NCBI RefSeq assembly: GCF_032191835.1
Contig: NC_083224.1
Coordinates: forward strand, 97,836,001 to 97,900,000
DNA from: Heteronotia binoei
Lineage: Eukaryota
DNA: 64,000 nucleotides
Direction of reading: 5' to 3'
Part shown: piece after piece, positions 1 to 20,743 of the stretch
Layout: every line of letters begins with the position of its first letter
How positions within the stretch are numbered: position 1 is the first letter of the stretch
Notes under the pieces: generated by a model
Told to the model about the DNA's origin: nothing
What the model saw: the letters and a program-made list of their open reading frames with translations, nothing else
Database searches by the model: none
Translations under genes and position numbers: made by a program

Positions 1-174
1 GATTTAAGCATGTTTTAAGTTTCTTAAAAAAATATTTGTGTTTGTGTTGTTTATAAAGTTTATATCTCTGCTACCTAATATTAAATAGGTACACACACAG
101 CCTGGCCTGACATGGCTTGGCTCAACAAAGTCTCATTTATGTCCGATCCAGCCCTCATGAGTTCGACACCCCTT
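1..174. mobile_element. hAT-type MITE, partial (CAGGGGTGTCAAAC TIR family)
   Basis: Ends in gagttcgacacccct (TIR). Reverse-complement similarity to the copy starting at 63760; fragments also at 40908-40968 and about 42400-42535. Confidence 0.7.
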
Positions 175-964
175 GTATGGTATATTTTTATGTGGAATGC
201 ATCACCTCTTCAATTCATTCAGAATTCAACTTTTAATATTAATTGAAATTTAAGAGCCCCAGGACACAATTTACTAAGAACTTACCTTTTGAGTTGAACT
301 TCCATTCCTGTTCCAAAAGTGGTGAATTTTTGTATGCTTTGTATGAATTGTATTTGATTTTCTTTGGAATTGACTAACTTGAATGAATGACAGACAAAAT
401 ATTTATTAGTGAGACTGAGATGTAATAATTATTTGGAGATTGTTCAAAATATACATATATTAAATTTTGTCCTATTTTATATAAAGAGCTTTGTATGTTC
501 ACAAATGGTGGGTTTTGCTGAATGTTGGTATGATTTGTTTCATCATGATGGACTGCAACATATAGAATGCTGTTATGCTCTGGCTTGGATTTTATGCTGC
601 AAAAAGATTTGCCATCTAATACCAGGTATTCAATATATTAGAATGGCTCACTTTTTTATTTTATCTGTTATGAAGGTGTAGAGATTGTACTGCATAGTGA
701 AACTTTTTTACCCTTTAATAAACTTTTATATATAAGGTCTGTTTTATTTGTGTGCATTCAACCTCAAAGACCCATGGGGCTGAGTATTGCTCAAAGGACA
801 AGGATCAATAACCCAGGGGGTCCTAGGTTTGGATTTCTGACAGAGAGCATCTTGCATTAGCAGAAGGCACCATCAACTGATGGAAATGCACAGGCAACAA
901 CTGAACAAAATTATATTATCCAACCAATTGTGGCAATGTATGCTGTGACAAAAAATGGCAGAGA

Positions 965-1110
965 AAAGAACATAAGAAGAGCCCTGCTGGATCAAATCAG
1001 TCCTCCATATAGTCCAGCATCCTGCTTCACACAGTGACCAACCATTTCCTTTTAAGGTCCAATAGAGGCTGAGGCCTTCCCCTGATGTGGCCTCCTGGCA
1101 CTAGTATTCA
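965..1110 (-). mobile_element. CR1-like LINE 3' end fragment
   Basis: aagaacataagaagagccctgctggatca...tagtccagcatcctgcttcacacagtg, the reverse of the tail type seen at 19000-19070. Confidence 0.55.
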
Positions 1111-1331
1111 GAGGTTTATTGCCTCTGTTTGGAAACAATCCCGAACAAAACCATTCTTAGAAAGCTGGAGTATTATGAATTAGGCTTCTCTAGGGTTCCT
1201 TACAGTTATTCCATGAGACATTCTCTGCATCCTGAAGTTAACACTATGAGTATTGAGGTGTGTTTGAAACAAAGGACAGCATTCACATTTGCAAAGACAA
1301 GAAAAGACTCCAAGTACATAATGTCAGAAGA

Positions 1332-1337
1332 TTTATT
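1332..1337 (-). terminator. Candidate SELENOP2 polyadenylation signal
   Basis: AATAAA on the minus strand about 310 nt downstream of the SECIS; position only, no transcript evidence. Confidence 0.4.
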
Positions 1338-1647
1338 TCTGCTAGAATATATTTTCACTTTTTCCATTTCAACACCCAGTAAACCACTTTTACCAAGGCT
1401 GACCTTGAATCTTCCTACTGAGTCAGATGTCTATAGAAATAAGAAATCCCCCACACTGCCTAGACTTGGCTAATTCCATGTCACCAACTTCAATCTATGT
1501 ATGGATCTCGATGTACAAAGCCTTGCGCTCCAGGCAAAAAGCCAGCTTTGCTCTGCTTTCACTTTTTCATATGCTAGCAGTTAGTATTATCCATCTGCCA
1601 AAACTGGTTTCTGATCCTGTCCCTCTAGTTCCTTTGACATACTTTTC

Positions 1648-1712
1648 TGTACAGTGTCAGCCTGCAGAGACTAGAATATTCTAGTTTACACTGCATACGT
1701 CATTAAATGCAG
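1648..1712 (-). promoter_or_regulatory. SECIS element (form 2) in SELENOP2 3' UTR
   Basis: Minus strand: tgcattta-ATGA-cgtatgcagtgt-AAA-ctagaatattctag-tctctgcaggc-TGAC-actgta. Shows the AUGA/GA quartet, helix II (gtatgcag/ctgcaggc), unpaired AAA and an apical mini-stem CTAGAA-TA-TTCTAG. Confidence 0.9.
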
Positions 1713-1777
1713 AAAAGCAGGAAATATGAAAGGGAATCAAGCCTGGCTTCCCAGCAGATAGCAATTGTAACACTTTT

Positions 1778-2558
1778 GGGTGCAGTCACACGTCACATTA
1801 AAAGCGGGTGTGTAGCGCTCAAATTTGAACCGCAGAATATTGATTCGATGCAGGGTCGTTCAGACGAGCATCCAAGAATGCGACTTATTCTGTTGTTGAG
1901 CGATCAGACATCCAATACTATCACGCTCTTTTCTTGGAGCATGAGTGATCAGATGGTGATTTCTGGGATGGGGGGGGGGTCCATTGAACATGTGCCCAAC
2001 TGTTTGGAGGTGGGAAATCAAACGTTGCTTCAGAGGCAGGGGGGACGGGGGGAAGTTTCCAGAATTAACGTTGCCGATTCAAACCAAGGAACTGCCAGGA
2101 ATTACTTTCCTAGAAATTGGCAGTGACAATAATATCTGGAAATCCTCCACACTGAAAAAATTTTTTTTTCCCTGTTCTGAATGGTGGGATAATGTCCCTC
2201 CCCCCTCCGATCCTGTGTTGATTGGAGAAGCAGAAGCGTCACCTCAGATTCCCGGATGATCTGGCAATGCGCATGTCTGCTGGGGCTTTTTAAAAAAAAA
2301 AGGTGGGAGGGGCGGTAAACATTCCAAGGGGCAGTATCGTGCGTGAGCTGTCCAAACAGGAAAAAGCTGATCTTGTGCTGCTTTTTTGAAAAAGGGCCGG
2401 ACTTTCTGCGCTGTCAAATTAATGCAGCACTGATCCGCAGCAAGTCGGAATGACCCTGGATGACGCTCGATTGCCAGATGTGGATGTCTGGACGAACATA
2501 TTTAATCCGTCAGCGAGACGGAGCTGTGTTGCCACTAATGGTACGTCTGAACGCACCC
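1778..2558. mobile_element. Non-autonomous DNA transposon (MITE, PIF/Harbinger-like TIR) in SELENOP2 3' UTR
   Basis: Imperfect TIRs gggtgcagtcacacgt (1778-1793) and acgtctgaacgcaccc (2543-2558), 13/16 match, with TTTT on both flanks. CpG-rich interior. Superfamily assignment is inference. Confidence 0.65.
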
Positions 2559-2683
2559 TTTTGTGACCCAAAGAAGGCAAGATGGCCACTGTCACCACAG
2601 GCAAAGTGAAGAATAAAAATTGCTTTGATATCTCAGCTCCAGGGCATTGACACTGTTGGCTTTGTGAAACACAGTTCTTGATA

Positions 2684-2795
2684 TAAAGCTACATCCATAC
2701 ATCATTGGCTATTGCATATAATTGGCTATTGCATATATACATCATTGGCTATTGCAAATATAAAGCTACATCCATACATCATTGGCTATTGCATG
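2684..2795. repeat. Short tandem/nested repeat (attggctattgca x4)
   Basis: aaagctacatccatacatcattggctattgca occurs twice, plus two shorter internal copies. Confidence 0.85.
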
Positions 2796-3215
2796 CTGAT
2801 TGCACTGTTGCAATCATTAGCAACTGAATTAGCTTGTCCACACAGGAAAATCCAGTTGTGAATTTTTGCTGTGACACAGCAATTGCACTGTATCCAATGA
2901 TATGTGCCTGTAACCCAAGTGTAATCACAGACTGATTCAAAATGAGAAGCCAGATTGCATCAAGTACAGTACATGCAGTTAGACTTACGATGGTGTGTGC
3001 CACATAACAAAAAAGCCATGTTCTAAAAGGGGTTTTGTGTTGATTTAGGAAGGGAACAGAAAATTCAGTATCCTTGCTGCTCTGAACATTGAACCATCTA
3101 ACTATTTATTCTGAAACGGTAGGTTTGACCTATGGTTTTAAAATATAGGCCCTCCCCCATTTAAACTAAAGCTATTTGCCTCACAGTTGGATCTTGCCTA
3201 CATAAAAACAAATTT

Positions 3216-3467
3216 TTATGATTCTGATTCCTGTTGTTTCTGTAGTTGGCTCTGAGAATGGGGAACTGGCTGGGATGTACCGGCCAAATCAAAGGCCCTG
3301 TGGTTGCTGCTCACTATATGATGCAAAATGTGATGGGTTACACGCTCTGCAAAGTTGGGTGCCTCTTTGGTCTTCCCTTCATGCTTGTGGCTGGAAACTT
3401 CCTGGCTCTTTTCACTGTGTCTGGAAGCCTCAGTTGTCATCACGCTAGTCTCTGCTGTGCTATTTAT
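3216..3467 (-). CDS. SELENOP2: SELENOP2 terminal coding exon (His/Ser-rich tail, no further Sec)
   Basis: Acceptor ttttcacag|ata, phase 0. INSTAETS...HKHEGK...HHILHH...ESES then TAA at 3216-3218. A single-Sec short form, consistent with SELENOP2/SelPb rather than multi-Sec SELENOP1. Confidence 0.88.
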   Translation of the reverse strand: MNSTAETSVMTTEASRHSEKSQEVSSHKHEGKTKEAPNFAERVTHHILHHIVSSNHRAFDLAGTSQPVPHSQSQLQKQQESES

Positions 3468-3914
3468 CTGTGAAAATAGCATCAAGTTCTGGTTTATTAT
3501 ATCAGTGGACAAGGTGAAAATAGATATATGATAGTTTTGTGCAAGGGGTTTGAATAGGCATTATCTTCATCCTTTGTTTTTAGGGCAGAAAATGCATGTC
3601 CATTTAAAATGTGACATCTGTGTGTGTAACCTAAGTCTAAATTGATAATTTCAGATGGTACAGATGCTTTGCAGTATTCCAACAACTTTTTAGCTTGCTG
3701 GAAAATTGTCCCAATTTTCTGTACACTAGACTAGCACAGAGACCTACTGAACAAGGATATGCAGTCCTCCTTCTACCCTATGCACCTCACTGTAAGGAGA
3801 ATGCAAGAAAAAATCTTACAGAATTTCTGTTCAGAAGATCAGGCTGGACCAATGTCCAGAAAATGAAGAAGCTTCATCAAGTGAGCAAGAGGGAGCAAGA
3901 ATTCAAATTCCTAC

Positions 3915-4053
3915 CTCTTGGTTGCTGTTAGAACGGTACCAGGAACAATTGCCACAGTAGTCATTGTAATATGTGTAGTGTACAGCAGCTTCAACATAAG
4001 GGAAGTGCAGGAAACTGTATGGCAACTGGATGTGGAAAGTCAGCTTGCTGCAC
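3915..4053 (-). CDS. SELENOP2: SELENOP2 coding exon 3
   Basis: 139 bp, gttatag|g ... gag|gtagga. CSKLTFHIQLPYSFLHFPYVEAAVHYTYYNDYCGNCSWYRSNSNQE contains the family motifs LPYSFLxFPYVE and CGNC. Confidence 0.95.
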
Positions 4054-5019
4054 CTATAACGTCCAAGAGTCATGGAAGAAAAAAAATTACAGAATTGGTG
4101 TCAGGATCCATTCACACCAGGAACGACTCTGGCCTGGTCTAAACTGGCCTTATGTTTTTTATAAAGTAAGACAATAATAAGAAAAAATGCATAACAAAGG
4201 CAATGAGTTGGTTGGAGAGTGACACAGGAGCACATTCATCTTTTGGCCCCTCATTTCAAAAGCTAACTCATTCAAGCTTTATGCTGTTTCGCTTCTCAGT
4301 CTTCAAGCTGCCCCAGTGTGTGCTGCAGAATATAATGCAGACATACCATCTCCACATTTTCCCCCCTAGACATCTCCACAAGCAGCCAAAGTTCAAGGCC
4401 CTCTGGTGCACGTGATGTTTGGAAAAGAAAGCAACAACAAGCTACTTTACACAATTCTCAAACCCTTGGAGCAAGTTAGGCAGGATAGAAATAAACTTTG
4501 CTGTCCAATGGAGACAGAAAATGGCAAGGGAGTGCAGTCTGGCCATCCCTGAGTCGGTACCAGGCACCACGTCAGGACAAAGATCAGAGCTTTTGATTGG
4601 TAGTTTAGATCCTATATTGAGGAACGGAAGATTGGTATCACTTACCGTGAAGCTTCCTTCTCGGTGGACTGGCAGTGGGTCGGTCCGACTACTGGGTATA
4701 GGCTCCTCCTCCTCGTCACAGGGTCGGGTGCTCCAATCGATCCGGAGGGGGAGTGGCCTATACCACCCAGGACGCGCCAGTTGTATCCAAGCCGCATCCC
4801 CCTAATAATAAAAATTTTCACCACCTCCCCATTCACGTACAGAGACGAATAAATGAGAAGATTAGTTTATTACAGTTCAACACACCATACAAATGGCAGA
4901 TTGAAAGAAAGTCACTGTTAAGCAAAGCAAAGGTAACATCCTCCCCACAGGGAAAGCACCATTGCTCCAGGATCCATCTCCAAAACTCAGGAAGCCGCTC
5001 AACCTTTAACGGGAGGGCC

Positions 5020-5122
5020 GGACCGACCCACTGCCAGTCCACCGAGAAGGAAGCTTCACGGTAAGTGATACCAATCTTCCGTTCTCCGGTGGTCTGGACA
5101 GTGGGTCGGTCCGACTACTGGG
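5020..5122. repeat. DIRS internal complementary region (ICR)
   Basis: 5020-5083 is the reverse complement of 4623-4686, and 5082-5122 is the reverse complement of 10063-10103. The two halves join at ...CCGTT|CTCCGG..., reproducing the circle junction. Confidence 0.95.
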
Positions 5123-5166
5123 ACGTAACAAAGCTGAACATCCCCGGGCGGGACCGGCTTCCCTGT

Positions 5167-6200
5167 TTAGAGTGCATGCTGCAGCACACGCCTCCCAAAG
5201 GCTGCCTCCGCTGAAGCCCATTTATCCACTTTATAGTGCCTGGTAAAGGTATGTACCGATTTCCAAGTCGCTGCCTTACACACAGCTTCTAAGGACGGAA
5301 AGGACCGGTACACAGCTGATGTTGCAGCACCCCTTAGAGAATGGGCCGTGATCCCATCTGGAGGGGTTTGACCTTGGGCCTTGTAAGCCAAAACAATACA
5401 CTCCCGTAGCCACCTGGCTAAGGGAGGAAGTGGAGACCTGTCGTCCCTGCGACTACTTGCTAAATGAAACAAACAATGCATCAGACTTCCTCCAGTCTTT
5501 TGTGCGATCAATGTAAAAACTAAGTGCCCTCCTAACGTCTAAACAGTGCAGCTCCCTTTTCTTGGGAGACTGGGGGTTGGGACAAAAATTTGGAAGAACC
5601 AACTCCTGGGACCTATGAAAGACAGAATTAACTTTAGGAATGAAAGATGGGTCTGGCCTCAGCACCACCCTTTCATTATGGAAAACACAAAGCTCCTAGT
5701 CGACCGACAGGGCCCTTAACTCAGACACTCTCCGTGCTGTAGTGATACCCACCAGAAAAATTGTTTTTAGAGTCAGTTCCTTCAGTCCACAGGAAGCCAT
5801 AGGTTCGAAGGGACGCCCACACAACACAGTTAGTACTATATTCAACTTCCACGAGGGGAATCTATGTACCTGTGGGGGCTTAAGGAGAGCAACACCCTTC
5901 AGGAACCGTTTAATGTGCGGATGCGCTGACAAGGACTTACGTCCCCGCACCCCCTGTATAGACGATATGGCCGCCACCTGATGCCGTAGCGTGCTGGTAG
6001 AAAGCCCCTTGTCTGCCCCTTCCTGAAGAAAACCTAGAATACCATTTACCTTCACCTTCATCGGATCCCACCCCCGTAAGGTAGACCACGAAGCAAAAAC
6101 CTTCCAGGTGGTATTGTATATCCTATTAGTGGAACACTTACACGATGCTAACATAGTGTCCACCACTCTGGTGCTAAAACCTAGTTCCTTGAGCTGTAAC
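5167..6200 (-). pseudogene. DIRS tyrosine recombinase
   Basis: STNRIYNTTWKVF, TTARRVSELRAL (catalytic R), AHSLR (HxxR), AATW, TRHY (catalytic Y). In-frame TAG at 5696 and 5453 and a +1 frameshift near 5425. Confidence 0.92.
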
Positions 6201-7965
6201 CGCTCAACTTCCAAACTGTCAATTGCAACATGTCTGGTTGAGGATGAGACATGCTGCCCTGTGTCAGAAGGTCGTCCCTCCCTGGCAGCCGCCAAGGAGG
6301 CTGAATAGACAACCTCAGGAGCTCCTGGAACCATGACCGTCTCGGCCAGAAGGGAGCCACCAACACCATCTCCGCCTTTAGTTCCACCACCCTCTGTAAC
6401 ACCCTGGGTAATAGAGGAAGGGGCGGGAAGGCCTACACTAGTCCCGTCAGCGCTGAGGGCATCGTTTCCTTCTGCCCTTGTGTCTCTGACCTTGGCAAAG
6501 AACCTGTCCACTTGGCAATTTTCTGCCGCGGCAAACAAGTCCACCGACACAGGTCCGTACCTGTCCACTATTAGACGGAAGGTGTCCCTGTGTAACATCC
6601 ACTCTGTTTGGTCCAGCCAGCGTCTGCTGAGCCAATCCGCTAGCAGATTGTCCTTCCCTGGAACATGCACCGCTTTGATTGACAGGAGATTGACTTCGGC
6701 CCACTCGAAGAGAGCCTTCGCCTCGGCATGAAGTGATTTCACCCTGGTTCCTCCCTGTCGATTTACATATGCTTTGAGTTGTCTGTTTTCACCAGGACAT
6801 GGTGACCCCTCAGAACTGCCTGCAACCCTAACCGGATCGCCCTGAGTTCCAGGAAGTTGATACTGCGCTTCATCTCGTGAGGCTCCCACTGACCCTGGAT
6901 CATTTGATCCTGTGAGTGAGCCCCCCAACCCCATAAACTGGCATCTGTAGTCATGCAAACCCTCTGAGGTTCGCAAAGCGGGTAACCTGGACTGAAAAGA
7001 CCCGGGTTCAACCACCACTGTAACTGGGACGTCACCTCTAACGGTAGTGTCACCAGTTTGGGAATTTTGCTCCTTATAATCTCCTGAAAAGGCCGCAGAA
7101 AAAATTGTAGGGGATGAGTGTGGAATCTGGCCCAAGACAGTAGATCCTGAAAGGATACCATCATCCCTAAGACTTGTGCTAACTTCATGACTGGCACCTT
7201 CGGTTGCTGTAACACCCCTTGCAGAAGGAGGCAAAACTTCTCCCGTCTCTCTGGGGTTAAGAAGACTCTGTCCACCTTTGTATTTATTTCCACTCCCAGA
7301 TGCACTAGTATCTGAGAGGGAAGCAGATTGCTCTTCTCTAGGTTCACCACGAAGCCGTGAGAGCGCAACATGGTCACTGTCTGCTGCATGCCCTCCAGGC
7401 ATTGCTGGTGGGACCCTGCCTTCACCAGAATGTCGTCCAGGGAAGGAAATAGGGCCACACCCCGTAATCTCAGCTCCGCCACCAGGGTCACCAGAATTTT
7501 TGTGAATACCCGGGGCGCAGACTGCAGACCAAACGGCAGGGCTCGATATTGAAAATGCTTCCCCCCGTAGGAGAAACGTAGAAAACTTCTGTGTGATTCC
7601 CGAATGGGAACATGCAAGTAGGCCTCTGACAGATCCAAGGAAGCCAGAAAATCCTGAGGCTGAATGGCTAGCAATACTGACCGTAGTGTCTCCATCTTGA
7701 AATGTTTTGTCAGGATGAACTTGTTGAGCCATTTCAGATCCAGAATGGTTCTGAACTCCCCGTTCTTTTGGGGAACTAAAAATATCACCAAATAGACCCC
7801 CAAACCCTGTTGAAGTACCGGGATGGCCTCCACTGCCCCTATATTCACCAAGTGCTGAATGGCCGACAACATTGCTCTGTGAGCAGATAAATCTTTTTTC
7901 CGGGGAACCCCTCGAAAATGGTTGGGGGGAAGAGAGTGGAATTCCAAGGCGTAACCTTGTTCCAC
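6181..7965 (-). pseudogene. DIRS pol: reverse transcriptase, RNase H, methyltransferase-like domain
   Basis: RTILDLKWLN, LDLSEAYLHVPI, LPFGLQSAPRVFTK, SLDDIL (RT). TTDASLWGWGAH, INFLELRAI, KTDN/KAYVNRQGG, NLLADWLSR (RH). AFPPLPLLPRVL, VLVAPFWPRRSWF (MT). Frameshifts near 6770 and 6450; YLDD reads SLDD. Confidence 0.92.
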
Positions 7966-8060
7966 TACTTCTAGAACCCACTTGTCCTGAATTGACTGAT
8001 TCCTCTGTGAAAAGGGAAGGACGACCCCCTATTTTGTTTGTCGGCTGGTGAGAGGCATAG

Positions 8061-9429
8061 TCACTGGGATCCTCCTTTCTTGGAGGGGTTTTTGGAACCC
8101 TGATCTGCCTTCCCAGAGTAATATGGTTTGGGATCACGCCCCTTCTGCTGCCACTTGCCTCTGAAGGGACGAAAGGAACCTGGTCTGGATGGTTTCTTCG
8201 AATCTCGAAAGGAAGGAAAGGACTTCCTCTGTTTCGACTCTTTACTCTTGGAAGGTAAAACCTTTTTATCCTTGTTCTCAATGAGGTATCTATCTAGACC
8301 CTCCCCGAACAACAAGGCTCCTTTAAAAGGCACCGCTGCCACCCTGGCTTGGGCTGCAGTGTCTACCTCCCAATTACGCAACCAAATGTTGCGTCTGGCA
8401 GCTACCCCACATGCCATGGCCCTGGCCGCCAGTTGCATGGTGTCTAATGAACTATCTGCCACGAAGGCAGCGGATAAAGCAATCTTTTTTAACTCGTCCT
8501 TGAACTCCTTAGGAGCTCCACTGTCTGCTGCTGCCAAGTTATTAGACCACGTGCACATTGCTCTGGCAAACAATGAAGACGTAGTGGCTGCCTTGATGGC
8601 CCAAGATGTCGCTTCAAACTCTTTGCGTAAGGCCTGCTCAACCCTCCTATCGCATGGATCCCTGGGTAAACCATCTGCGTCCATAGGAAGGACCGAATTG
8701 GAAATCAGGCTAGTTACAGGGTCATCCACTGTTGGTAACTTTAATCTCTTAGTAGCCTGTGGAATAAGCGAATAAAGTTTGGAGAGAACCTGTTGGTTTG
8801 CTTTAGGCTTAGTCGGACGTTCCCATTCCGCTTTGACTAAGGCAAAAAAGGCCGCAGGCAAAGGAACCCCTGTCTGCACTGCTCAATTTTGGCATCATCT
8901 CCCCTGAACCTGTGGGGAGATCAGGATCCAACTCCTCATTTTCTTTAGGAGTGGGTACAAAGTTGAAGGTCCTCAGTACTTTGGGAAGCAATTTTGAATA
9001 GTATTCAGAAGGAAAGAGCCTAGATTGAACAGTGTCAGTCTGCTCCTCCTTGTCTGACAGTTCACCCTCCTCCTTATCTGACTGCTCAGAGTTTTCTGAT
9101 TCCTCAGCTGAGCTCAAGAGGGGGGAATCCAAACCCAAAGGAGGCTTGATCTTAGAGCGTCCTTCCATAGTGTCACTGGGACTAGTATCTCTGCCCCTTT
9201 TCCCTCCATCCTTCTTTTTTGGTTGTAGGGAAGCAGGGGAGTCCAGCTGCTGACGAAGGTCCTGTCCCAACTCTTTTAGCAGCTCTTTCTTAAGCCAAAG
9301 GACTAAATTTGACTTGGCATCCTCTCCTGTGAGGTCAAGATTCTGAGCCTCCTGTTGAGGAGTCAGAGCCCCAGACAGAAGAGGTAGACCACATTCGCTG
9401 TGTGAGTTGCTGTGTGAGCTAGCCGCCAT
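8061..9429 (-). pseudogene. DIRS gag-like ORF1, frameshifted near 8880
   Basis: ATG at 9429 (MAASSHS...). The second part VPLPAAFFALVKAEWERP...LPTVDDPV...DPCDRRVEQALRK...LFGEGLD resembles vertebrate DIRS1 ORF1. Confidence 0.8.
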
Positions 9430-10397
9430 TTTGTAGCTTCTCACGTCCCTATAAGGGAAGGAAAGGCAAAAGCAACTAAAAAAGAAGCGGGAAAAGGCTC
9501 AGAATGGAAGACAGAATGTCTCCGTTGCACCCTCTATTGGGCCTTTTGGTATCTTGCCTTCCAGTCAGGAACAAACCCCCTCAGAGGCCTCTCTCTCTCA
9601 CTCCTTTGCCAAGCCTATACGACTAGGCAGTCCGAAGGAGAGACAACGCGGGCAGCCTGGGGACCCATCTGAAGCCCCGTGGACTCGCGCGCAGCCCTGT
9701 TGCTGTAGGGCGGCTTACCGCGCTGCCTCTGCGCTTACCGCCTCTCTTTCCTTCCGGCTTGGTTCCAATCGCGACTGCGAGGGAATGAAGCGCTGCGGGC
9801 GTCTGCCGTTCGCTCAAGGTCTACTCGTGAGTAGACCCCGCAGACTGCCGCCACCGGTGTTGTTGGGACCGATCCCAACGCTTCCGGTCTGTTTTGTTTC
9901 AGTAATCCGGATCTTCTGCGCTTCTCAGCAAGCGCCTGGAGAAAAACCGTCCTGCCTCGTGCAGGGCCGGGAGAAGAACTGGCGCGTCCTGGGTGGTATA
10001 GGCCATTCCCCCTCCGGATCGATTGGAGCACCCGACCCTGTGACGAGGAGGAGGAGCCTATACCCAGTAGTCGGACCGACCCACTGTCCAGACCACCGGA
10101 GAATTTGGGATTTCAATCCCCACCATGTACTATCATTCTCATAGCTCACTTCTGTCTGCATACTGTGTTAGTCACCTTTCAAATAGAAGCAAGAATAAGT
10201 GTAGGCAATTCCTTGGAGAGCCATCTTGTCCTGATAAATGATTGAAGTTTGTAACCCTGCAAACTGCCTGGCAAGTTACATTGATGGTTCATGGTCCTTT
10301 AAGTTATCTAGAGCCTGGGTTCTACTAAGGAGAGAGACATAACAATGTCCCTTTCCTTGCTATAAAGACAGCAGAGGAAATTAGTTTAAACACTGAC

Positions 10398-10610
10398 CTG
10401 TCATAGATCAGGAAGTCATCCTTGTCCCCATGTAGAATTTGCCAGACATCAGGTTCCAAGATCTCCTGCTGGTAAACAGGCATTCCCTCTGGAGCATGCC
10501 GCTTGAGCTCCCAATACATTGCCCGGGAAAAAGGAGTCTTCTCATTCACAATCATGAAGCTTATATTGACCATCCCTTCATGGGACAGTTTCTTCTGCAA
10601 GTTGCCAAGG
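10398..10610 (-). CDS. SELENOP2: SELENOP2 coding exon 2
   Basis: 213 bp, ctaccag|c ... gacag|gtcagt, phases 2/2. SLGNLQKKLSHEGMVNISFMIVNEKTPFSRAMYWELKRHAPEGMPVYQQEILEPDVWQILHGDKDDFLIYDR is typical of SELENOP. Confidence 0.95.
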
Positions 10611-10824
10611 CTGGTAGTAGAAAGCAGCAAGAAAATTCAGGAAATGAGGAGAACTCACCCCTTCCTCTGCATACACACTAAAGACAGTCATTTCCACAGG
10701 CTGGCTCACAAAACTCACCTATCTGGCAAAAGCAGTTACAGAGTCCAATTCTACATAGCTCTTGTTCTACACAACATTAGAATATGTATAAATTCTAATT
10801 CAGGAGCAAATTACATCCATCTTG

Positions 10825-12493
10825 GGGTTTTTTTGATAAAACAATTTTATTAGTAACATATGGTAATAAATCTATATCTATATCTTACATCTTAAAAATT
10901 TATTTTATCTACCCCATATATTACTTTCCAACCCCCCCCCATTACTTGACCCCCGCCAGTGTTATTTACTTTAAAAAATATATTAAAGGTACCCTTAACT
11001 ATTAAAACAAGAATTTATATTCTTCTTTTTAAAACTTAATTATTGTCAAAAATTGTCCAATGTCCTTTTATTTTCCACTCTTTTTCTATATATCTTCTAA
11101 CCTTTTTCCACTCCGTCTTAAAAACTTCTAACTCATAGTCTCTTAATATTCTTGTTAATTTGTCCATTTCACTCCATGTCATTACTTTTATAATCCAATC
11201 CCATTTCTCTGGTATTTTTTCTTGCTTCCACAACTGCGCATACAATGTCTTAGCAGCTGAAAGCAAGTACCAGATTAAAGTTTTATCTTCTTTTGGAAAT
11301 TTTTCCATTTGTAATCCCAATAAGAAAGTCTCTGCAACTTTCATTACTTCATATCCCAATATCCTAGAAATTTCTTGTTGAGTCATTTGCCAATACTGTT
11401 TTGCTTTTTCACAAGTCCACCATATATGGTAGAAAGAACCTTCATGCTTTTTACATTTCCAACATCTGTCTGGCATCTTTGCTAATTTTTTAGGAGTCAT
11501 ATACCATCTATACATAATCTTAAAACAATTTTCTTTAATACTTTGACATGAAAGTTTCATAGAGTTCTTCCACAAATATTCCCAAGTTTCCATCTGTATT
11601 TTTTTATTTACATTAATTGCCCACTTGATCATTTGAGATTTCACTACTTCATCTTCTGCAGACCATTGTAGAAGTAATTTATATACTTTTGAAATTAATT
11701 TATCATTGTCTCCAAACAGAACTTTTTCCATTTCTGTTTGCTCTTTCCTTATTCCTTCAGTTTTAATATCCTTCTCCACCAAGCTCTTTATTTGTTGCAT
11801 TTGGAACCAATCATATTTATGATTCAACTCTTCAGCAGTTTTCAGTTCTATTTTGCCACTTTGTATTTTTAATAATTGATTATATGACAACCACTTTTCT
11901 TCACCTATCTCAGCCATTATTTTTATTACTTCAGCTGGCACTATCCATAACGGTCTTCTCTCATCTCCATATTTCTTATATTTCATCCATGTATTTAGCA
12001 AATTATTTCTTATATAATGGTGAGAGAAAAAACCGTCCATCTACTTTTTTCCATAATACAAATACGTGTGCCAGCCAAATTTATTTCCGTGACCTTCCAG
12101 CACTAAGAGTTTTTTGTTTAACAGCGTTATCCATTCTTTTATCCACACTAAACAAACTGCTTCCTGATATAATTTTAAATTCGGTAGTTGAAATCCACCT
12201 CTCTCTTTTGCATCTGTCAAAATTTTCATTTTAATCCTTGGTTTCTTCCCAGCCCACACAAATTCTGAAATTTTCCTTCGCCATTTATCAAATTGTTTAC
12301 TATCTTTCACAATGGGAATAGTTTGAAACAAATACATTATTCTTTGTAGAATATTCATTTTAATTGCAGCTATTCTACCCAGCAGTGACAAATTAAGTTT
12401 ATTCCATTTTAACATATCTTCATCCACTTTAAGCCACAGCTTCTCATAATTATTTTTATTTTTAAACAGATCAATATTCTTCATGGTTATCTC
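10825..12493 (-). mobile_element. 5'-truncated L1 LINE (ORF2 C-terminus) in SELENOP2 intron 1
   Basis: LSLLGRIAAIKMNILQRIMYLFQ, WAGKKPRIK, RWYMTP, CWKC...HIWWTC zinc knuckle. AATAAA plus A-tail at the 3' end. Perfect 18-bp TSD caaattacatccatcttg at 10807-10824 and 12494-12511. One frameshift in an A-run near 12040. Confidence 0.95.
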
Positions 12494-12714
12494 CAAATTA
12501 CATCCATCTTGTGTATGTGAATTGTATCTGGCCAATGCAGCTACTGTTTGTCTGAAGTTCAGTAGCCTTTCTCATGCTCAAAGATCATATCTTGCTTTTC
12601 CCAGAATTTCCAAGTGCTTTAAGAGAACTACATGTATATTCAGTTACACACACATAAACTTCATGATGCATTCCAATTAATGCTAGAGAGTTACCTCTGG
12701 TGTAAAGCTGCCAA

Positions 12715-12897
12715 CTCTGGGTTGCAAAATTACTGGAGATTTGTGAGTGGAGTCTGGGGAGGTGGGGTTTAGAGTCTACTATCCATACAGTTCACCTTCC
12801 AAAGCAGCCATTTTCTTTAGGGGAACTGATCTCTGTAGGGTGGTGAACAAATGTAATTTTGGGAGCTCTCCAAACCCCACCTGGAGGTTGGGAAGCC
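12715..12897. mobile_element. Degenerate MITE (TAGGGTTGCCA family)
   Basis: Shares ccttccaaagcagccattttc...ggaactgatctctgt...cacctggaggttgg with the element at 35393-38035. Confidence 0.6.
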
Positions 12898-13044
12898 TTC
12901 TCTGGTGCAGTGATGTCCCTTTCAGGTCTACCCTGAACAATTGCTTAGGGCCACCTAGGAGATGGACAATTCCTGTTTGGGGATGGAGCTTGCTGCCATT
13001 ATTCTTCCCTTATCTTCATTTTCCTGTATTCCCCCTTAGAACAG

Positions 13045-13172
13045 AGATTCAGGGAGGTAGCTGACCATGTTGGTCTGAAGCAGCAGAACAAAGTTTGAGT
13101 CCAATGGCATCTTTAAGACCAACACAATTTTATTCAAGATAGCTTTTTTGTGCATGCACACTTCTTCAGATA
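13045..13172. repeat. Dispersed repeat, Penelope-like terminal-repeat fragment
   Basis: ttggtctgaagcagcagaacaaagtttgagtccaatggcatctttaagaccaac...cacacttcttcagatac. Related copies at about 18130-18250 and, reversed, 62020-62105. Family assignment is from memory of reptile repeats. Confidence 0.45.
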
Positions 13173-13678
13173 CAGAAGAACAGTGATACTAAGTGGCTGA
13201 GGGGCCACTTGTGGCTCTTCTGAGCACAGTTCTGCAGTTTGGACCTGGTCCATGTTTCAGGGAAGTGGGCAAGGCCTTTGTCTAGTGGGCTTATTATTGA
13301 CAGATTATTCCCACCCTGCAACAACCAATGCCAGAGGAATAACTAAACTGCAGATGCACCCATTCCCGGCCAGTGGCTGGGGGACTTGGCAACCCTAGCC
13401 AGGGACAGAAGTAAATGTAGCTCTTTTGCTTGATGGCAATTGCAAATGTGGCTCTCCATAAGTGAGTACCATTGTCTTAGAATATTTCAAAAGGCCTATG
13501 GAGCTATGGAGGACTTATTCAGTTCAATATTTTATGGCAGAGAGTAGTCCCTCCTGATCCAAATGCATGATTCTAGGTTCACCATGATGTTAGTGAATTC
13601 TGACATGTATGTGATACTGCATCTTGCACTCATTTACAGCCCCAGGGACAGGTGGTTTTCTCCATATAGTGAACTCAC

Positions 13679-13915
13679 CTGGCAGCTTGCTTGAGACAGA
13701 ATTGTCAGCTGGCTTTTAACAGTGCCACTACTGTCACTTGGCCCTCCATCCAATCCATTGGGACTGTCCCATTGATCTTCCAGAGTGGTGCAGGCTGGCA
13801 TATTTGGCTCCTGTTCTCAGCTGCTTCTACCAGTGTGGCGGTAATCACCAATCCTACCAAGAAGGTTGTTGTGGCTAAGGCGGGACACAGTTCATCTTTT
13901 CCATATCCATGCAGC
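13679..13915 (-). CDS. SELENOP2: Selenoprotein Pb (SELENOP2), first recognisable coding exon: signal peptide and UxxC motif
   Basis: Minus-strand translation LCPALATTTFLVGLVITATLVEAAENRSQICQPAPLWKINGTVPMDWMEGQVTVVALLKAS-TGA-QFCLKQAA. This matches the SELENOP family motif GQVTVVALLxASUxxC. TGA at 13705-13707. Acceptor ttattgtag|13915, donor ag|gtgag after 13679. No in-frame ATG inside the exon as assembled (see findings). Confidence 0.92.
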
Positions 13916-14274
13916 CTACAATAAGATAAATACAGTAGGATTAAGAATACAACAGCTCCCTTTGCAGGTCAGACTCAGGCTGCAATTCTCAACAGATAAA
14001 ATAAACATAGTAGGATAAGATAAATAGAGTAGGATTATAACCGCTCCCTTTGCAGGTCAGACTCAGGCTGCAATTCTCAACAGATTTATTTCTGAGTAAA
14101 CTCAGTTGAGCTTAATTTGTAAAGATCCATATTCTTTGATGTCTTGTTTCTGAATGTGGTCAATTAATGATGGATGCTAAAGGTGAAGTCACATGGCAGC
14201 TACCAAGGCTTGAGCCCCCTTGTGTCAAATTCAGAATTGTTAAGGGTTCAGTTATACTAGAGATCTATAAATAC

Positions 14275-14609
14275 CTTTGTATTCCCTCAGATATGAGCTC
14301 CAGGAGGACAGCATTTGTATCAGAAAGCATTGCGAGGGAAGATGCAACTGTCTTGATCCATAGCAGCCCTGTTGCAAATTGCTCCCTCAGGGATCTCCTG
14401 AAACCATGTGTAAATATATCCTGAATCAACTTTCCCCTGAGTTCTTCCCTTCTAGCAGCATAACTAGGCTGATTCTTCCAGTTCAGCAAATTTAATATCC
14501 TCAACACGCTGCACAATTTCTCAGATGTTGCAGTCCAATTGTTTTTCAGCAATAGCAGAAACAGATATGCAATGGGGTCAGTTTTCCTGACATTTTTGTT
14601 TTAAATTAC
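14275..14609 (-). other. Candidate exon upstream of SELENOP2 carrying an open frame of about 105 codons
   Basis: Acceptor ctccccgcccccacccgcag|14609, donor aaag|gtattt after 14275. Frame ...DPIAYLFLLLLKNNW...AMLSDTNAVLLELISEGIQR. No family recognised. Confidence 0.4.
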
Positions 14610-17384
14610 CTGCGGGTGGGGGCGGGGAGGCACAGATTTTAATTGCGTTTTAATCTAATTCAGTTCAATTTAATTTGAGAGAACAAATGTTTAATCCTTA
14701 GGGTAAGGGCAGTGGGTATGCTGAACTTGAACTTTTTCAGCCCATGTAATAATTTGTAAAAAAAAACCCCAAACATGTTGTTTCTTCCCCTTTCTCTTCC
14801 TTCAGTTCAAATTTGCTATCAGTTGTATAAACTGTGCCTTCCACACAATGCAGAAAGTACTCTTACAGTTTAAAGAATTAGAGCTTGTTTTTAGGCTAGA
14901 AAACCGTTGTGGCTGTTAAACAATGATAACTAACAAGAGATAGTCTCTCCATATTTGTAGCATCCCAAATTCCACACTCTTAGCCTGCACAGTTCTGTTC
15001 ACCAAAGATCCCTTATGGTCAGCTTTTCAAAAACACTATCTCCTATGCTATGATCCTGAAAATAATCCCTCTTTAGCTGATATGATTTAGTATAGCAGGT
15101 TGCTCCAAAGTGGGTGATTCTAAAAGCTTCAAGGGGGTAATGGGTAACTAAGAAACTAACCATCTATTTAAGGAATGTGTTCATTATAAATAGGTGAAGT
15201 TTTATTAATTAAAAAAACAACAACCTCCAAGTAAATGCATTTCTGATACTAACAATTCACAGACAATAAAATACACAAAAGTCCTGGGCTTGGCAATGTC
15301 ATGGTCATGAACATTTCTGTTGGTTGTAATACTGATTTTGCAATAATTTCTTTGAAACCCACCAACAAATGTGGCAGCCACGTCTAGGGAAGAAGGCTGC
15401 CTACACCTGTGTGTTTAACTTTTTAATCCAAGGAAGCTGCTATTAGCCTGCAGAGAGAAAAACCACAACCATGATTCAAGTCCCTGTAATTTTTTTCCTG
15501 CTGCAAGGTTAAGGCAACTTCAGGGTATGTGTAAGATTTAGACTGGTAAAATAGCACTGTATGGGGTTGTTCACAGGCCTGGAGAAAACTGTCCGGTCCC
15601 TTTACTGGAGGCCTAATGTGTGGAAATAGGCAGCTGAAGCTTTTCCTGGCATCCTGTTAAGACTCAAACAGGACTCCCCTCCTCCAATCAGCTGCAACCT
15701 GACTGTTGAAAGAATTAAATACCCCATACTTTTATTCATCTTGAACCCATCTTACCAAAATGTAAAAAGATATTGGGAGGTTTTATTATGTATGTCCCAT
15801 GTGTATCACATCTATTTCAACCTAGTCGAAGATCACTGTATTTCAGAAGCAGCATATGGGAACATATTGCATAAAACCTCCCTAAGCCCCAAGTAATTAG
15901 AAGATCCTTTCTCATGTCTGTATAAAGTTCCTCTTTTTCTGTTACTGAACTGCCCCATCTAAATCAGGCTTGGAAGAAAGGAATCCTACGCTGGTCTACT
16001 CAGAAGTAGATTCCATGTTATTCAACTGGGCTTTCTCAAAGACTGCAGCCATATACATTGTCTTACCTAACATAAAAGTCAAAATCACACTCTCATATTA
16101 ATAATTTTTAAAAATGCAGAAATGGAAGTTGAAGAGAGTAATAAGTACCCCTTTTAAAATTTGCTAACACAAAACAGGTTCACATACATGTTACCTTGAG
16201 AAAATGATCTTGACAGGTCTTCTCATGTACTTACACCCTGGAAAAGGATTTAAATGAGTCTGGATTCAGCCTTATTGTTACTGTAGTGGTGTTACAGTAT
16301 GTGCCAGCATGAGGAATATTTGTGCAGAAAAATATGCCCAGATTTTGAGCCACCATATGCTCTTGCATATATACTGACCTCTTTAACACATCCTTCAAAA
16401 GGCTGATTACAGTTGTGTTATTCTTTTGAAAATCGTTCTGGATTAACTTTTTCATAGACTCACTTCACACATGACAAGGTAGGAAATCCATGTGCAAAAA
16501 ACTAATGCCATAATGTGTGTGTGTGGGGAGAGAAAATAATTTTGGTACAATTTAACACCAGTAGCGCACAGAAGCTATTGTGACAAAATGGTATATGCTT
16601 GGGCCAAAACAGATATACAATTTTCACATGATAAAGTCAGCAGTAAGTATAGGAACTGTAAACTTCACAAGTAGAGCTAGGAAACAATATTTAAGAAAAG
16701 AAGTAAATTCAATACTAAATAATCATAGAAGCAAAACTTCCTATATCATATCTGCAAGGCGCCTCTGCTACTTCAAAAATTTAATGAAGAACTGGTGGCC
16801 TGGTGCAACTGCTTGAACTTGTAGGTTCCAAAAGCATAGAATTAGTCACAGTTCTAGTAGATCTTGCAAGCAGAAAAAGCAACTCCTGGAGAACCTGTGA
16901 ACAAATATGACTAATCATAGATGCATGTCAAGGGCGAAATCTTACAGAAACCCAACACAGAAGCACATAACAGAACAAAGTTGATTCAGACTTTGTTCTG
17001 TTGCTTCAGACCAATGCAAATAGGCACCAGAAGCACACAATATAACTCTCTTCATTCCCTAACATAATCCTAGTAAGGAATTGCCAGCATCTTTTCTCTG
17101 TTATGACAACCCTTTGCCTTCCCTTCCTCTTCAAACAGTTCAAGTGCTGCCCGTTTTCCTCCCTTCTGTCTTTGTTCTCTGCAGCTTGCACATTTTGAAA
17201 ATTCTATACTCTTAGTTTTTATTTGAAGTTTGGCAAACTAAAGCAAAAATTATCACAAGAAGATTGATGTAATACACTGTCTAGATGCCCAGGACTGCTT
17301 CTGTGAAGATCATGTTAGTGAAACCTCAACAATTTTCATCCCCCTAGTTAAAAAAAACAAACCCACTAATCCTTCTTATACTAG

Positions 17385-17561
17385 TAGGATTGCCAACAGG
17401 TCTAGTGAGAAATGTTCTACGCCTTTAATAGAGGCTTAATGTGTGGAAATAGACAACTGAAACCTTTCATAACAAGGAGGTAAATAACATCACCTGGTAA
17501 ATAACACCTCATTCTGTTAAAGGGACAGGATTTTTTTCTCTCCAAACAGTTGGCAAACCTA
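17385..17561. mobile_element. MITE (TAGGATTGCCA...TGGCAAACCTA)
   Basis: Imperfect TIRs; a fragment of the same interior lies at about 15570-15660. Confidence 0.5.
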
Positions 17562-18719
17562 AGGTCATGTCAATCAAACCTTGCCAGTCTTATGCCTCAG
17601 GAATCCAGAGGTCTTTAACCTAGGGAAAAATAATGATTGCTTACATCCCTCCTTCCTTCCCTTTTGTGTCAAATCTCACAGCTAGATAACTTACAGAATC
17701 TAACCCAGATGACACCCTCCCCAATTAATTTCCACACAAAATTCCTAATGTGATACTCTGCCTTTTCCCCGATGACTCCAGCTTTAGTTCTATGCCGTCC
17801 TTTGAGGGAACTCTGCTTTCTCTAACCTTCTACCCGTATGCTGGCTCCAGCGTGCTTTTTCTCCCATTTCAGTCCTCTTCTCCCAAAAGGGGCTGGGACA
17901 GGATGTGTGTGTTAAAGTGGCAGTTACCCACCGAGATGTCCCTGGGAAATCACATAGCAGTATGCATAGTGCTCACCACTGCCAATCAACAAGCAGTACT
18001 TGTTTACTCAGGGATCAAGTGTAGTAGCTTGAAGAGATATCTTTCAGTGCTATACAGTCAATGCTGGGAGAGCATTATCTCCTTCCAGAGCACTGGCAAG
18101 CCACCTGACAGTTGCCAGTTACATCTAAGAATACGTAGAACAGATTTTGAGTCCACCTTTAAGACCAACACCTTTAAGACCAACAAAAGTTTATTCAAAG
18201 TATGAGCTTTCATGTGCACACACACTTCAAACACACACTTCAGACATATAGAGATGGAAGCTAATGTTTCATATATATAGGCAGATGCCTCCACATAAGT
18301 GAAGAACAAATTAACATACAACTGAATGAAGATGTTTTGACATATGCAAAGCAAAGACTAAATAAGAATTGGTACTATTGGTACAACACTCATGACGTGA
18401 CAAGAAGGAAACAGCTTGAAAAGGAAGTTCCAGAGGGTATACCACATTTTTGCATTCAAATTGCATCTCTTTATTTGTGGTCATGCTGCTTGTTTTCCTA
18501 CAGGTAAAAAAAAATCCAAGATCAGCTGTGCATGATAAGATATTAAAAGATTAAGCATATAGGAAATAGAGTTCCTTTGTGTCTCCTGCTCTGGCATGAA
18601 CTTCCTAAGCTTTTATCTCCAAAACATTCCAAGGCACAGATGGAACAATAAACTGTTCTCCTTAGAGTAATTTTGCAATTGTCTTTGCCAGGCTGCTTCC
18701 ACTAGTAGGGCATATACAT

Positions 18720-19070
18720 GGGATGGAGAAAGTAGAGAAAGAAGTACTTTTCTCCCTTTCTCACAATGCGAGAACTCATGGGCATTCAATGAAATTGCTG
18801 AGCAGTCAGGTTAAAACGGATAAAAGGAAGTACTGTGGAATTCACTGCCACAGGAGGTGGTGGCGGCTACAAGCATAGCCAGCTTGGATAAAAATATGGA
18901 GCAGAGGTCCATCAGTGGCTATTAGCCACAGTATGTGTATATATATGTGTGTGTGTGTATATACACACACATATACACACACACACATATATCGGTCACT
19001 GTGTGACACAGAGTGTTGGACTGGATGGGCCATTGGCCTGATCCAACATGCCTTCTCTTATGTTCTTATG
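18720..19070 (+). mobile_element. CR1 LINE 3' fragment with internal (TG)n/(CA)n microsatellite
   Basis: tctcacaatgcgagaactcatgggcattcaatgaaattgctgagcagtcagg...gatgggccattggcctgatccaacatgcc...tatgttcttatg tail. Confidence 0.7.
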
Positions 19071-20743
19071 TTGTGTGCATTGCCCAGCTTTAAGAAAAAT
19101 TTGAAAGTAGGAGTCTACACAGAACGGGCAGCGCAATCCAGAAATAAGTAGCGGCTGGCTGTGGGGTAGCTGCCACGCCGCTAGTAGATTTCCTGAGGAC
19201 TTCGGAAGGCTGGAGCGTGGGGAGGGGAGAGGCGTAGCTTGCCGTGAAGGAGACGGTCGTCATGGCAATGCCACTGGCATAGGCACGCAAGGAAGGCAGA
19301 GGCAGCTGGAGGGGAGGGCCAGCCCACCCCCCCATTGGCCAGTGCTGGCGCATGCGCCACAACTCATGACAGTCAGGGATGGGGAGAGGCGGCCCCAGAG
19401 AGACTGATAGCCATCCCCAATCTGCCCCCAAACAGAGAACAGAGCCAATGATGGGCAGACCATCAAAGGCAAAGGAGAGACGTCCCACCAACACAGGGAG
19501 GAATCAGGAGTGAGGCTGGGCATGCGTGCATGAGAAGCCTGGCTTGGTGGCAAGGTGGGGGTGAGGGCAAGACAGGCCTGCACGGGACCACGGAGAAGCC
19601 ATCAATCCCCTCACACCCTCCCGCTGTCAGAGACTTTGCCAATGGCAGGTAGACAAGCAGGAAGTACCAAGTGCATGAGTTCGCTGTCATAGACAGCTGC
19701 TGGAATGTGTGTCTGGGAGTGAGCAGCCCAGCAGCAGACACCCCCCCACCCAGAGACCCCCTGTGTTGCCCTGATGCCCCCTGCCATGTGCACGGAACTC
19801 CTCCCCCGGGGGCCGCAGAACTCAAGAGTGTGACTGCATCAGCTGCAGAACTCTGAGTCCACTTCATCAGCCCCCCCCTTAGTGCCCTGCGCACAACAGC
19901 ACTGTGGGGCTGGGTCGGCTGTCAGCCCGGGCAGGCTGAGGGGCGGCACTCCCCTTCCCTGTCCAGCCACGCAGGGGGCAGTGTGGCAGCTCATAGACCG
20001 TTTCCCCCCCAAAAACCCCAAGTCTTCCCAGCCTTCCAGGCATTTCCCTCAGAGAGGCCACTGCCGGGGGCGGGGGTGGGGCACGGTTTGCCCAGGGAAC
20101 ATGCAGCAGATGCCAAGAAGGAGAGACAACAGAGGGCACAGCTCAGACTTTATTTTTCCGGAACAGAGCACAACAGTCTCCCTGGCACATGCTGGGCAGT
20201 CTCGCTGTGGGCGGGGCGCCATTCCGAGTGGCGGGCAGAAACAGCTGAGGGAGTGGGGGGGCGGTGGAGCGACACACGCGGAAGCCTCTGTGTTGGAGTC
20301 CCACCTGCAAAATGGAGATAGAGATCAAGAGCACCTGCAAGGGCGGCAGCTGGAAGAGCAGGCTGTGTTTCAGCCAGGTGCTCTCTTAAAGGGACAGTCT
20401 CTGACCCACCTCCCTGCAACGGGGCAGCTGCCACACACACACACCCCTGTGCCCTGCCAGGGGGTGGGAACGCGGCAGAGGGCAGACCAAGGGAAGGGAG
20501 CAGGTGGCAGCACAGGGGAGCAGGGCAAGCAAATGCCCCCTGCCGGAGCCCACTGCCTGGTTCAAGTGCCGGAGATGCTCGCAAACCGAGTGGTCGAGAG
20601 TGAAGGGAGGGGGAGGCCGGGGGGGGGGGGGGGGACAGTGGAATTTACCCAGCCATGGGTGACAGTCCTCACATGCAGAGCCTCTGGGAGCCCGAAACCT
20701 GTGGAGACCTGGAAACAAGAGCAGTTAGCCCCAGGGAAGAGAC

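Follow-up and report, generated by a model that had tools for sequence, protein, structure and literature searches.

How is a secreted selenoprotein to be started when the exon that encodes its signal peptide has no ATG in the corresponding frame? This question is raised by a SELENOP2 gene on the minus strand of the window, by which we mean the whole 64,000-nucleotide stretch of DNA analysed here (coordinates are counted from its first letter, and the gene is read from higher to lower positions). SELENOP2, also called SelPb or SEPP1b, is a single-selenocysteine (Sec) paralogue of non-eutherian vertebrates. An earlier sequence-only reading of the window had drawn attention to the missing start and had proposed two ways of restoring it: an adenine absent from the assembly, or an alternative upstream exon.

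A five-exon lizard SELENOP2 with an intact body

To recover orthologues, word searches were run first with the exon 2 peptide and afterwards with the best match that it gave. The matches were short open reading frames ending at the Sec TGA, located on two lizard-like genomic contigs (P0001/L001 and P0002/L002), on a spliced transcript (P0003/L003) and in three turtles; the first of these searches returned two relatives only and no closer species. Exons were analysed and searched one at a time, never joined, and hydropathy was counted per exon.

Exon 2 (13679-13915), the first coding exon in the orthologues, contains the leader, the start codon, the signal peptide and the beginning of the SelP_N domain, as delimited by RNA contigs and by a Pfam match in the signal-peptide frame (PF04592, E 5.8e-08). 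The UxxC redox motif is located at 13696-13707, with the Sec TGA at 13707-13705 and the cysteine at 13698-13696 (LLKAS-TGA-QFC), and the residues flanking the Sec codon, QFCLKQAA among them, are identical in L001, L002 and L003. Exon 3 (10398-10610) and exon 4 (3915-4053) are open, match SelP_N (Pfam E 2.4e-25 and 7.4e-16, respectively) and share 92% and 95% identity with L001. The coding part of exon 5 (3216-3467) is open and His-rich and ends at TAA 3218-3216; it contains no further TGA and gave no match to SelP_C or to any other Pfam family. Exons 3-5 are bounded by standard ag/gt ends, and no second stop or frameshift was found in about 820 coding bases. Compared with L001, the summed exon pieces gave a pS of 0.196 and a pN of 0.043 (pN/pS 0.22), a pattern of substitution indicative of purifying selection on the coding parts relative to these relatives.

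Like other SELENOP2 genes, the locus spreads SelP_N over exons 2-4, places its one in-frame TGA within UxxC and ends in a His-rich tail that carries no more Sec codons; its exon 1/exon 2 joint is that found in a relative's mRNA, and one candidate type-2 SECIS lies downstream. Based on the single-Sec architecture and on the turtle and lizard best hits, the gene is assigned as a five-exon minus-strand lizard SELENOP2.

This candidate SECIS is located at 1640-1710 on the minus strand, about 1.5 kb past the stop codon, the corresponding distance at the turtle locus (L004) being about 370 nt. It was detected by scanning for the AUGA...AA...GA helix pattern, with the turtle locus as the positive control, followed by folding; the same scan recovered a textbook SECIS in L004 at about 17436. 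The predicted fold of the window element comprises helix I, an internal loop and helix II, with the AUGA and GA of the core, an AAA bulge and a mini-stem. About 97 nt can be aligned with the turtle element without internal gaps, the core letters being kept and both helices showing compensatory changes. Rfam reported no SECIS, either at the gathering threshold over 1-20000 or in E-value mode over 1-3400, a result that is uninformative because the turtle SECIS was missed likewise. Poly(A) signals are present at 3110, 2506 and 1337, and length arithmetic places the ends of the two RNA contigs described below near 2766 and 2501, short of the candidate element.

Scans of 2300-3215 yielded additional SECIS candidates that were rejected as weak, namely a hairpin at 3175-3099 and ATGA copies within a tandem repeat at 2700-2800. 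This repeat, on the minus strand of the putative 3′ UTR, has a unit of ~20 nt (GCAATAGCCAATGATGTAT...), and each unit includes an ATGA that mimics the SECIS core with no helix behind it.

The ATGs of exon 2 are out of frame with the signal peptide

Reading and translating the minus strand confirmed that the signal-peptide exon has no ATG in the frame of the signal peptide, as had been claimed. Its three ATGs, at 13910, 13904 and 13895, are in phase with one another, in a frame that encodes MDMEKMNCVPP over 11 codons before it is closed by a premature TAG at 13877-13875; this translation, too, agrees with the sequence-only reading. The neighbouring frame, one base off, encodes LHGYGKDE followed by a 21-residue uncharged hydrophobic segment and then CQPAPLWKING...LLKAS-TGA-QFC. 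On the minus strand, neither exon 2 nor the part of exon 1 that is known has an ATG in the signal-peptide frame before 13758, and the earliest ATGs of this frame (13758 and 13749) are both past the signal peptide. A cleavable signal peptide initiated at an AUG is thus not encoded, since the exon 2 AUGs ahead of 13758 are all out of frame. Two of these AUGs are well placed for initiation: AUG 13904 carries G at both -3 and +4, and AUG 13895 carries A at -3.

The recovered orthologues begin M-G-(C/Y/L)-P or M-V-F immediately before the hydrophobic core, with the turtle proteins beginning M-G-L-P. The ATG aligned with 13895 is the start codon in four orthologues, squamate-like and turtle, in agreement with the earlier choice of this ATG as the relevant one, and the codon at 13893-13895 is the ancestral start. 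Because each recovered orthologue has an ATG directly before the hydrophobic segment, the missing in-frame start is a real anomaly.

Two extra bases follow the third codon

In a DNA alignment (A1) the ATGs of L001 and L002 line up with the window ATG at 13895, and the leader elements aaaag and ccagg are common. Directly after codon 3 the window reads CTGTGTCCC, compared with C--TGTCCC in L001 and C--TATTCA in L002. The window therefore carries two extra bases relative to the two lizard-like contigs, which are the orthologues alignable at this site, and the lesion of SELENOP2 is, on this alignment, a 2-nt insertion causing a +2 frameshift right after codon 3. The insertion falls in the TGTGT run at 13885-13889 (alignment A1 and gap-free RNA contigs), in which the assignment of the two extra letters is ambiguous. 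Unlike in other SELENOP2 genes, two extra bases after codon 3 here part every AUG from the signal peptide.

The ATGs at 13910 and 13904 (13902-13910) are derived: the aligned positions of L001 and L002 show none, and both arose through substitutions in the leader. Sharing the frame of 13895, they would have done no harm before the insertion.

Spliced RNA carries the insertion and defines the upstream exon

Four RNA runs were mapped on 13400-19399, two as raw reads (X12 and X13) and two in contig form (X2, with the label organism A, and X3, with the label organism B). X12 and X13 gave almost no depth on the gene and yielded no transcript starts, ends or strand. X2 and X3 each contributed one spliced contig: that of X2 measures 1336 nt and has a depth of 43, that of X3 measures 1589 nt and has a depth of 94. 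Both span 13679-13913 with no gaps and one other letter, a single-letter difference from the assembly somewhere in this interval that cannot mend the frame. The disabling lesion is accordingly seen in RNA that is independent of the assembly, and it is absent from the alignable orthologues L001 and L002.

Both contigs jump from 13913 to 17760, skipping 3846 letters with four ambiguous letters at the joint, and continue past it for 47 (X2) and 35 (X3) letters. Only a shift of 2 within this ambiguity yields standard intron ends, which defines a GC-AG intron 1 at 13916-17761 with donor gc 17761-17760 and acceptor ag 13917-13916 (AAAAG|GCAGAG ... TTGTAG|G). GC donors form a small minority among vertebrate introns. 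The acceptor at 13915 is real, and the upstream exon joined to exon 2 ends at 17762, 3.8 kb upstream.

The known part of exon 1 (17762-17806), recovered from the X2 and X3 contigs, contains no ATG. Its counterpart by alignment is the 5′ end of L003, the spliced mRNA of a relative, in which exon 1 and exon 2 meet at an identical GGGAAAAG|G joint, and 17806-17762 is therefore best described, from its sequence, as a conserved non-coding first exon. The signal-peptide frame is open through exon 1 back to a TAG at 17832-17830, and it stays open from 17829 to the Sec codon.

These RNA contigs bear directly on the two rescues proposed before. According to one, the assembly is short of one A after ATGAA (13891-13892), and the true gene would read ATGAAACTG and encode MKLCPALA.... 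One base added there would indeed restore the frame. However, the contigs of two runs are gap-free over 13679-13913, and since they are independent of the assembly they contradict an assembly error as the source of the frame problem. The orthologues, moreover, point to two extra bases in TGTGT 13889-13885 rather than to a missing A, and their aligned residues are M-x-C-P, not M-K-L-C-P. We regard this explanation as highly improbable; both the lesion and the assembly error were misjudged, while the accompanying suggestion of a real null allele survives as one of the possibilities that had been named.

The other rescue would splice an upstream exon at 14275-14330 on the minus strand into 13915, giving an N-terminally extended, signal-anchored SELENOP2. 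Its elements exist as described: an ATG at 14330, an open frame, a phase-compatible gt donor at 14274-14273 just past 14275, and the acceptor at 13915. Their use in splicing found no support in RNA. Depth was zero over 14000-14599 in X12, X13, X2 and X3, none of the four runs gave a joint from the 14275 donor, and the sole joint into 13915 comes from 17762, the end of an exon orthologous to the 5′ end of the relative's mRNA. As the upstream exon ends at 17762 and not at 14275, the proposal is unsupported in these samples, and there is very little chance that it is correct. For annotation, these features mean that gene predictors will either truncate SELENOP2 here or invent an upstream exon of this kind.

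A young null allele or a gene rescued by unconventional initiation

An insertion present in the spliced RNA of two runs, behind a true exon 1 and splice joint and ahead of intact downstream parts, is best read as a real, transcribed and evolutionarily young SELENOP2 allele that is null or strongly reduced (probability about 0.6), with the loss of protein inferred. In the corresponding model, two bases were inserted in the TGTGT run just past codon 3 of the ancestral frame. Ribosomes starting at the three exon 2 AUGs would stop after 11, 9 or 6 codons, and most ribosomes would be expected to make only these short peptides because two of the AUGs, 13904 and 13895, lie in good context. The signal peptide and the Sec-containing thioredoxin-like domain would then not be made through normal AUG initiation. 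If the allele is null it must be young, because it combines a single lesion with constraint that is visible against relatives. Because contigs drop minority alleles, the population may also contain an intact allele.

One lesion in about 820 coding bases, together with a kept SECIS and an abundant mRNA, also fits a gene in use through a rescue. The main candidate is a CTG in the signal-peptide frame of exon 1 (17779-17781, context AAGCTGG). In this explanation some scanning ribosomes would start at CUG 17781 (AAGCUGG), or at CUG 13914 or 13890, and make a reduced yield of secreted SELENOP2 with an extended signal peptide. CUG 17781 lies ahead of all the AUGs in a context with A at -3 and G at +4, and no stop intervenes before the signal peptide; reading from it gives LESSGK, a split Arg codon, LHGYGKDE and the 21-residue hydrophobic segment. 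This core of 21 uncharged residues equals that of the orthologues in length and hydropathy, and continued use would suit an otherwise intact gene with a SECIS and abundant mRNA. However, chance alone would leave a frame of about 17-30 codons open in about 25-45% of cases, the L003 mRNA lacks a CUG where it aligns with this site, and CUGs 13914 and 13890 are located at, or come after, strong AUGs. CUG starts are, in addition, usually several-fold to tens-fold weaker than AUG. We therefore hold rescue from these CUGs to be a tentative possibility, and its stricter form, in which secreted SELENOP2 would be made solely from CUG 17781 and the former 5′ leader would become the n-region of an extended signal peptide, to be rather doubtful. 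Initiation further downstream, by re-initiation or leaky scanning to AUG 13758 or 13749, would instead produce a cytosolic protein without signal peptide that keeps UxxC. Both AUGs are in frame, and upstream open reading frames of 6-11 codons permit re-initiation, but the out-of-frame AUGs 13801 and 13772 would be encountered earlier. The product would also begin ~18 residues into SelP_N, without the conserved cysteine of CQPAP, and an unexported secreted-protein fold is unlikely to be useful; this outcome is very unlikely.

Two further ways of changing frame at GGAAAAG were considered and rejected. Ribosomal -1 frameshifting lacks an X_XXY_YYZ heptamer there, and the run of four A is probably too short for transcriptional slippage.

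Relation to known losses of SELENOP2 and to known CUG starts

SELENOP2 was lost in Eutheria and underwent Sec-to-Cys conversion in Anura and sharks, according to two studies (PMC3316567; bioRxiv 10.1101/2025.05.29.656587), and it is consequently dispensable in some lineages. Squamates are not mentioned for SELENOP2 in the passages of these two sources that were searched. The null or reduced allele proposed here would resemble the known losses and conversions in being a lineage-specific change that removes or reduces the use of a selenoprotein in a tetrapod. Unlike in those cases, the gene is present, transcribed and otherwise intact and has kept its Sec, and the change is a start-proximal frameshift in place of a deletion or a Cys conversion. 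A frameshift so near the start is an ordinary kind of lesion. Were the allele both null and fixed, the loss of SELENOP2 would have been caught in progress in a squamate, a reptile case would join the convergent trimming of the selenoproteome seen in eutherians, frogs and sharks, and the lizard would be a natural knockout of a poorly understood gene.

In FGF2 and MYC, CUG-initiated N-terminally extended forms coexist with a form started at an AUG in the same frame. As in these genes, the SELENOP2 candidate is an in-frame CUG in good Kozak context, upstream of the AUGs, that could add an N-terminal extension; unlike in FGF2 and MYC, it would be the sole route to the protein. Should initiation at CUG 17781 prove true, the locus would provide a natural example of a selenoprotein gene in which non-AUG initiation makes up for a frameshift near the start. 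Should the protein still be made, it would offer a clean natural test of how far non-AUG initiation can sustain a secreted selenoprotein.

Repeats and neighbouring sequence

Intron 1 contains a tandem duplication just upstream of the exon 2 acceptor, with copies at 13939-13997 and 14027-14085 (88-nt period, 59-nt core, 92% identity). The relative L001 has a single copy of this 88-nt-period unit, which aligns to both window copies. Upstream of exon 1, an interspersed repeat at 18700-19075 is broken by (TG/TA)n at 18927-18997 and reaches a summed RNA depth of 10^4-10^5, with all four runs contributing. Its many loose ends and back-joints point to a very abundant SINE or LINE-tail family and not to local expression; ARAGORN found no tRNA and Rfam no family in this repeat. 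Between 18 and 26 kb of the window the open reading frames look transposon-like. In the turtle locus L004, a 414-aa glyoxalase-domain gene (3037-4281) lies ~6 kb upstream of SELENOP2 on the opposite strand.

Introns 2 and 3 of the window gene are swollen by retroelements, at 11036-12535 and 5696-9444, respectively. Intron 2 contains LINE-like open reading frames of 334 and 164 aa. Intron 3 contains a DIRS-like element with long reverse transcriptase and gag-like open reading frames, and measures ~6.3 kb compared with ~0.9 kb in L001.
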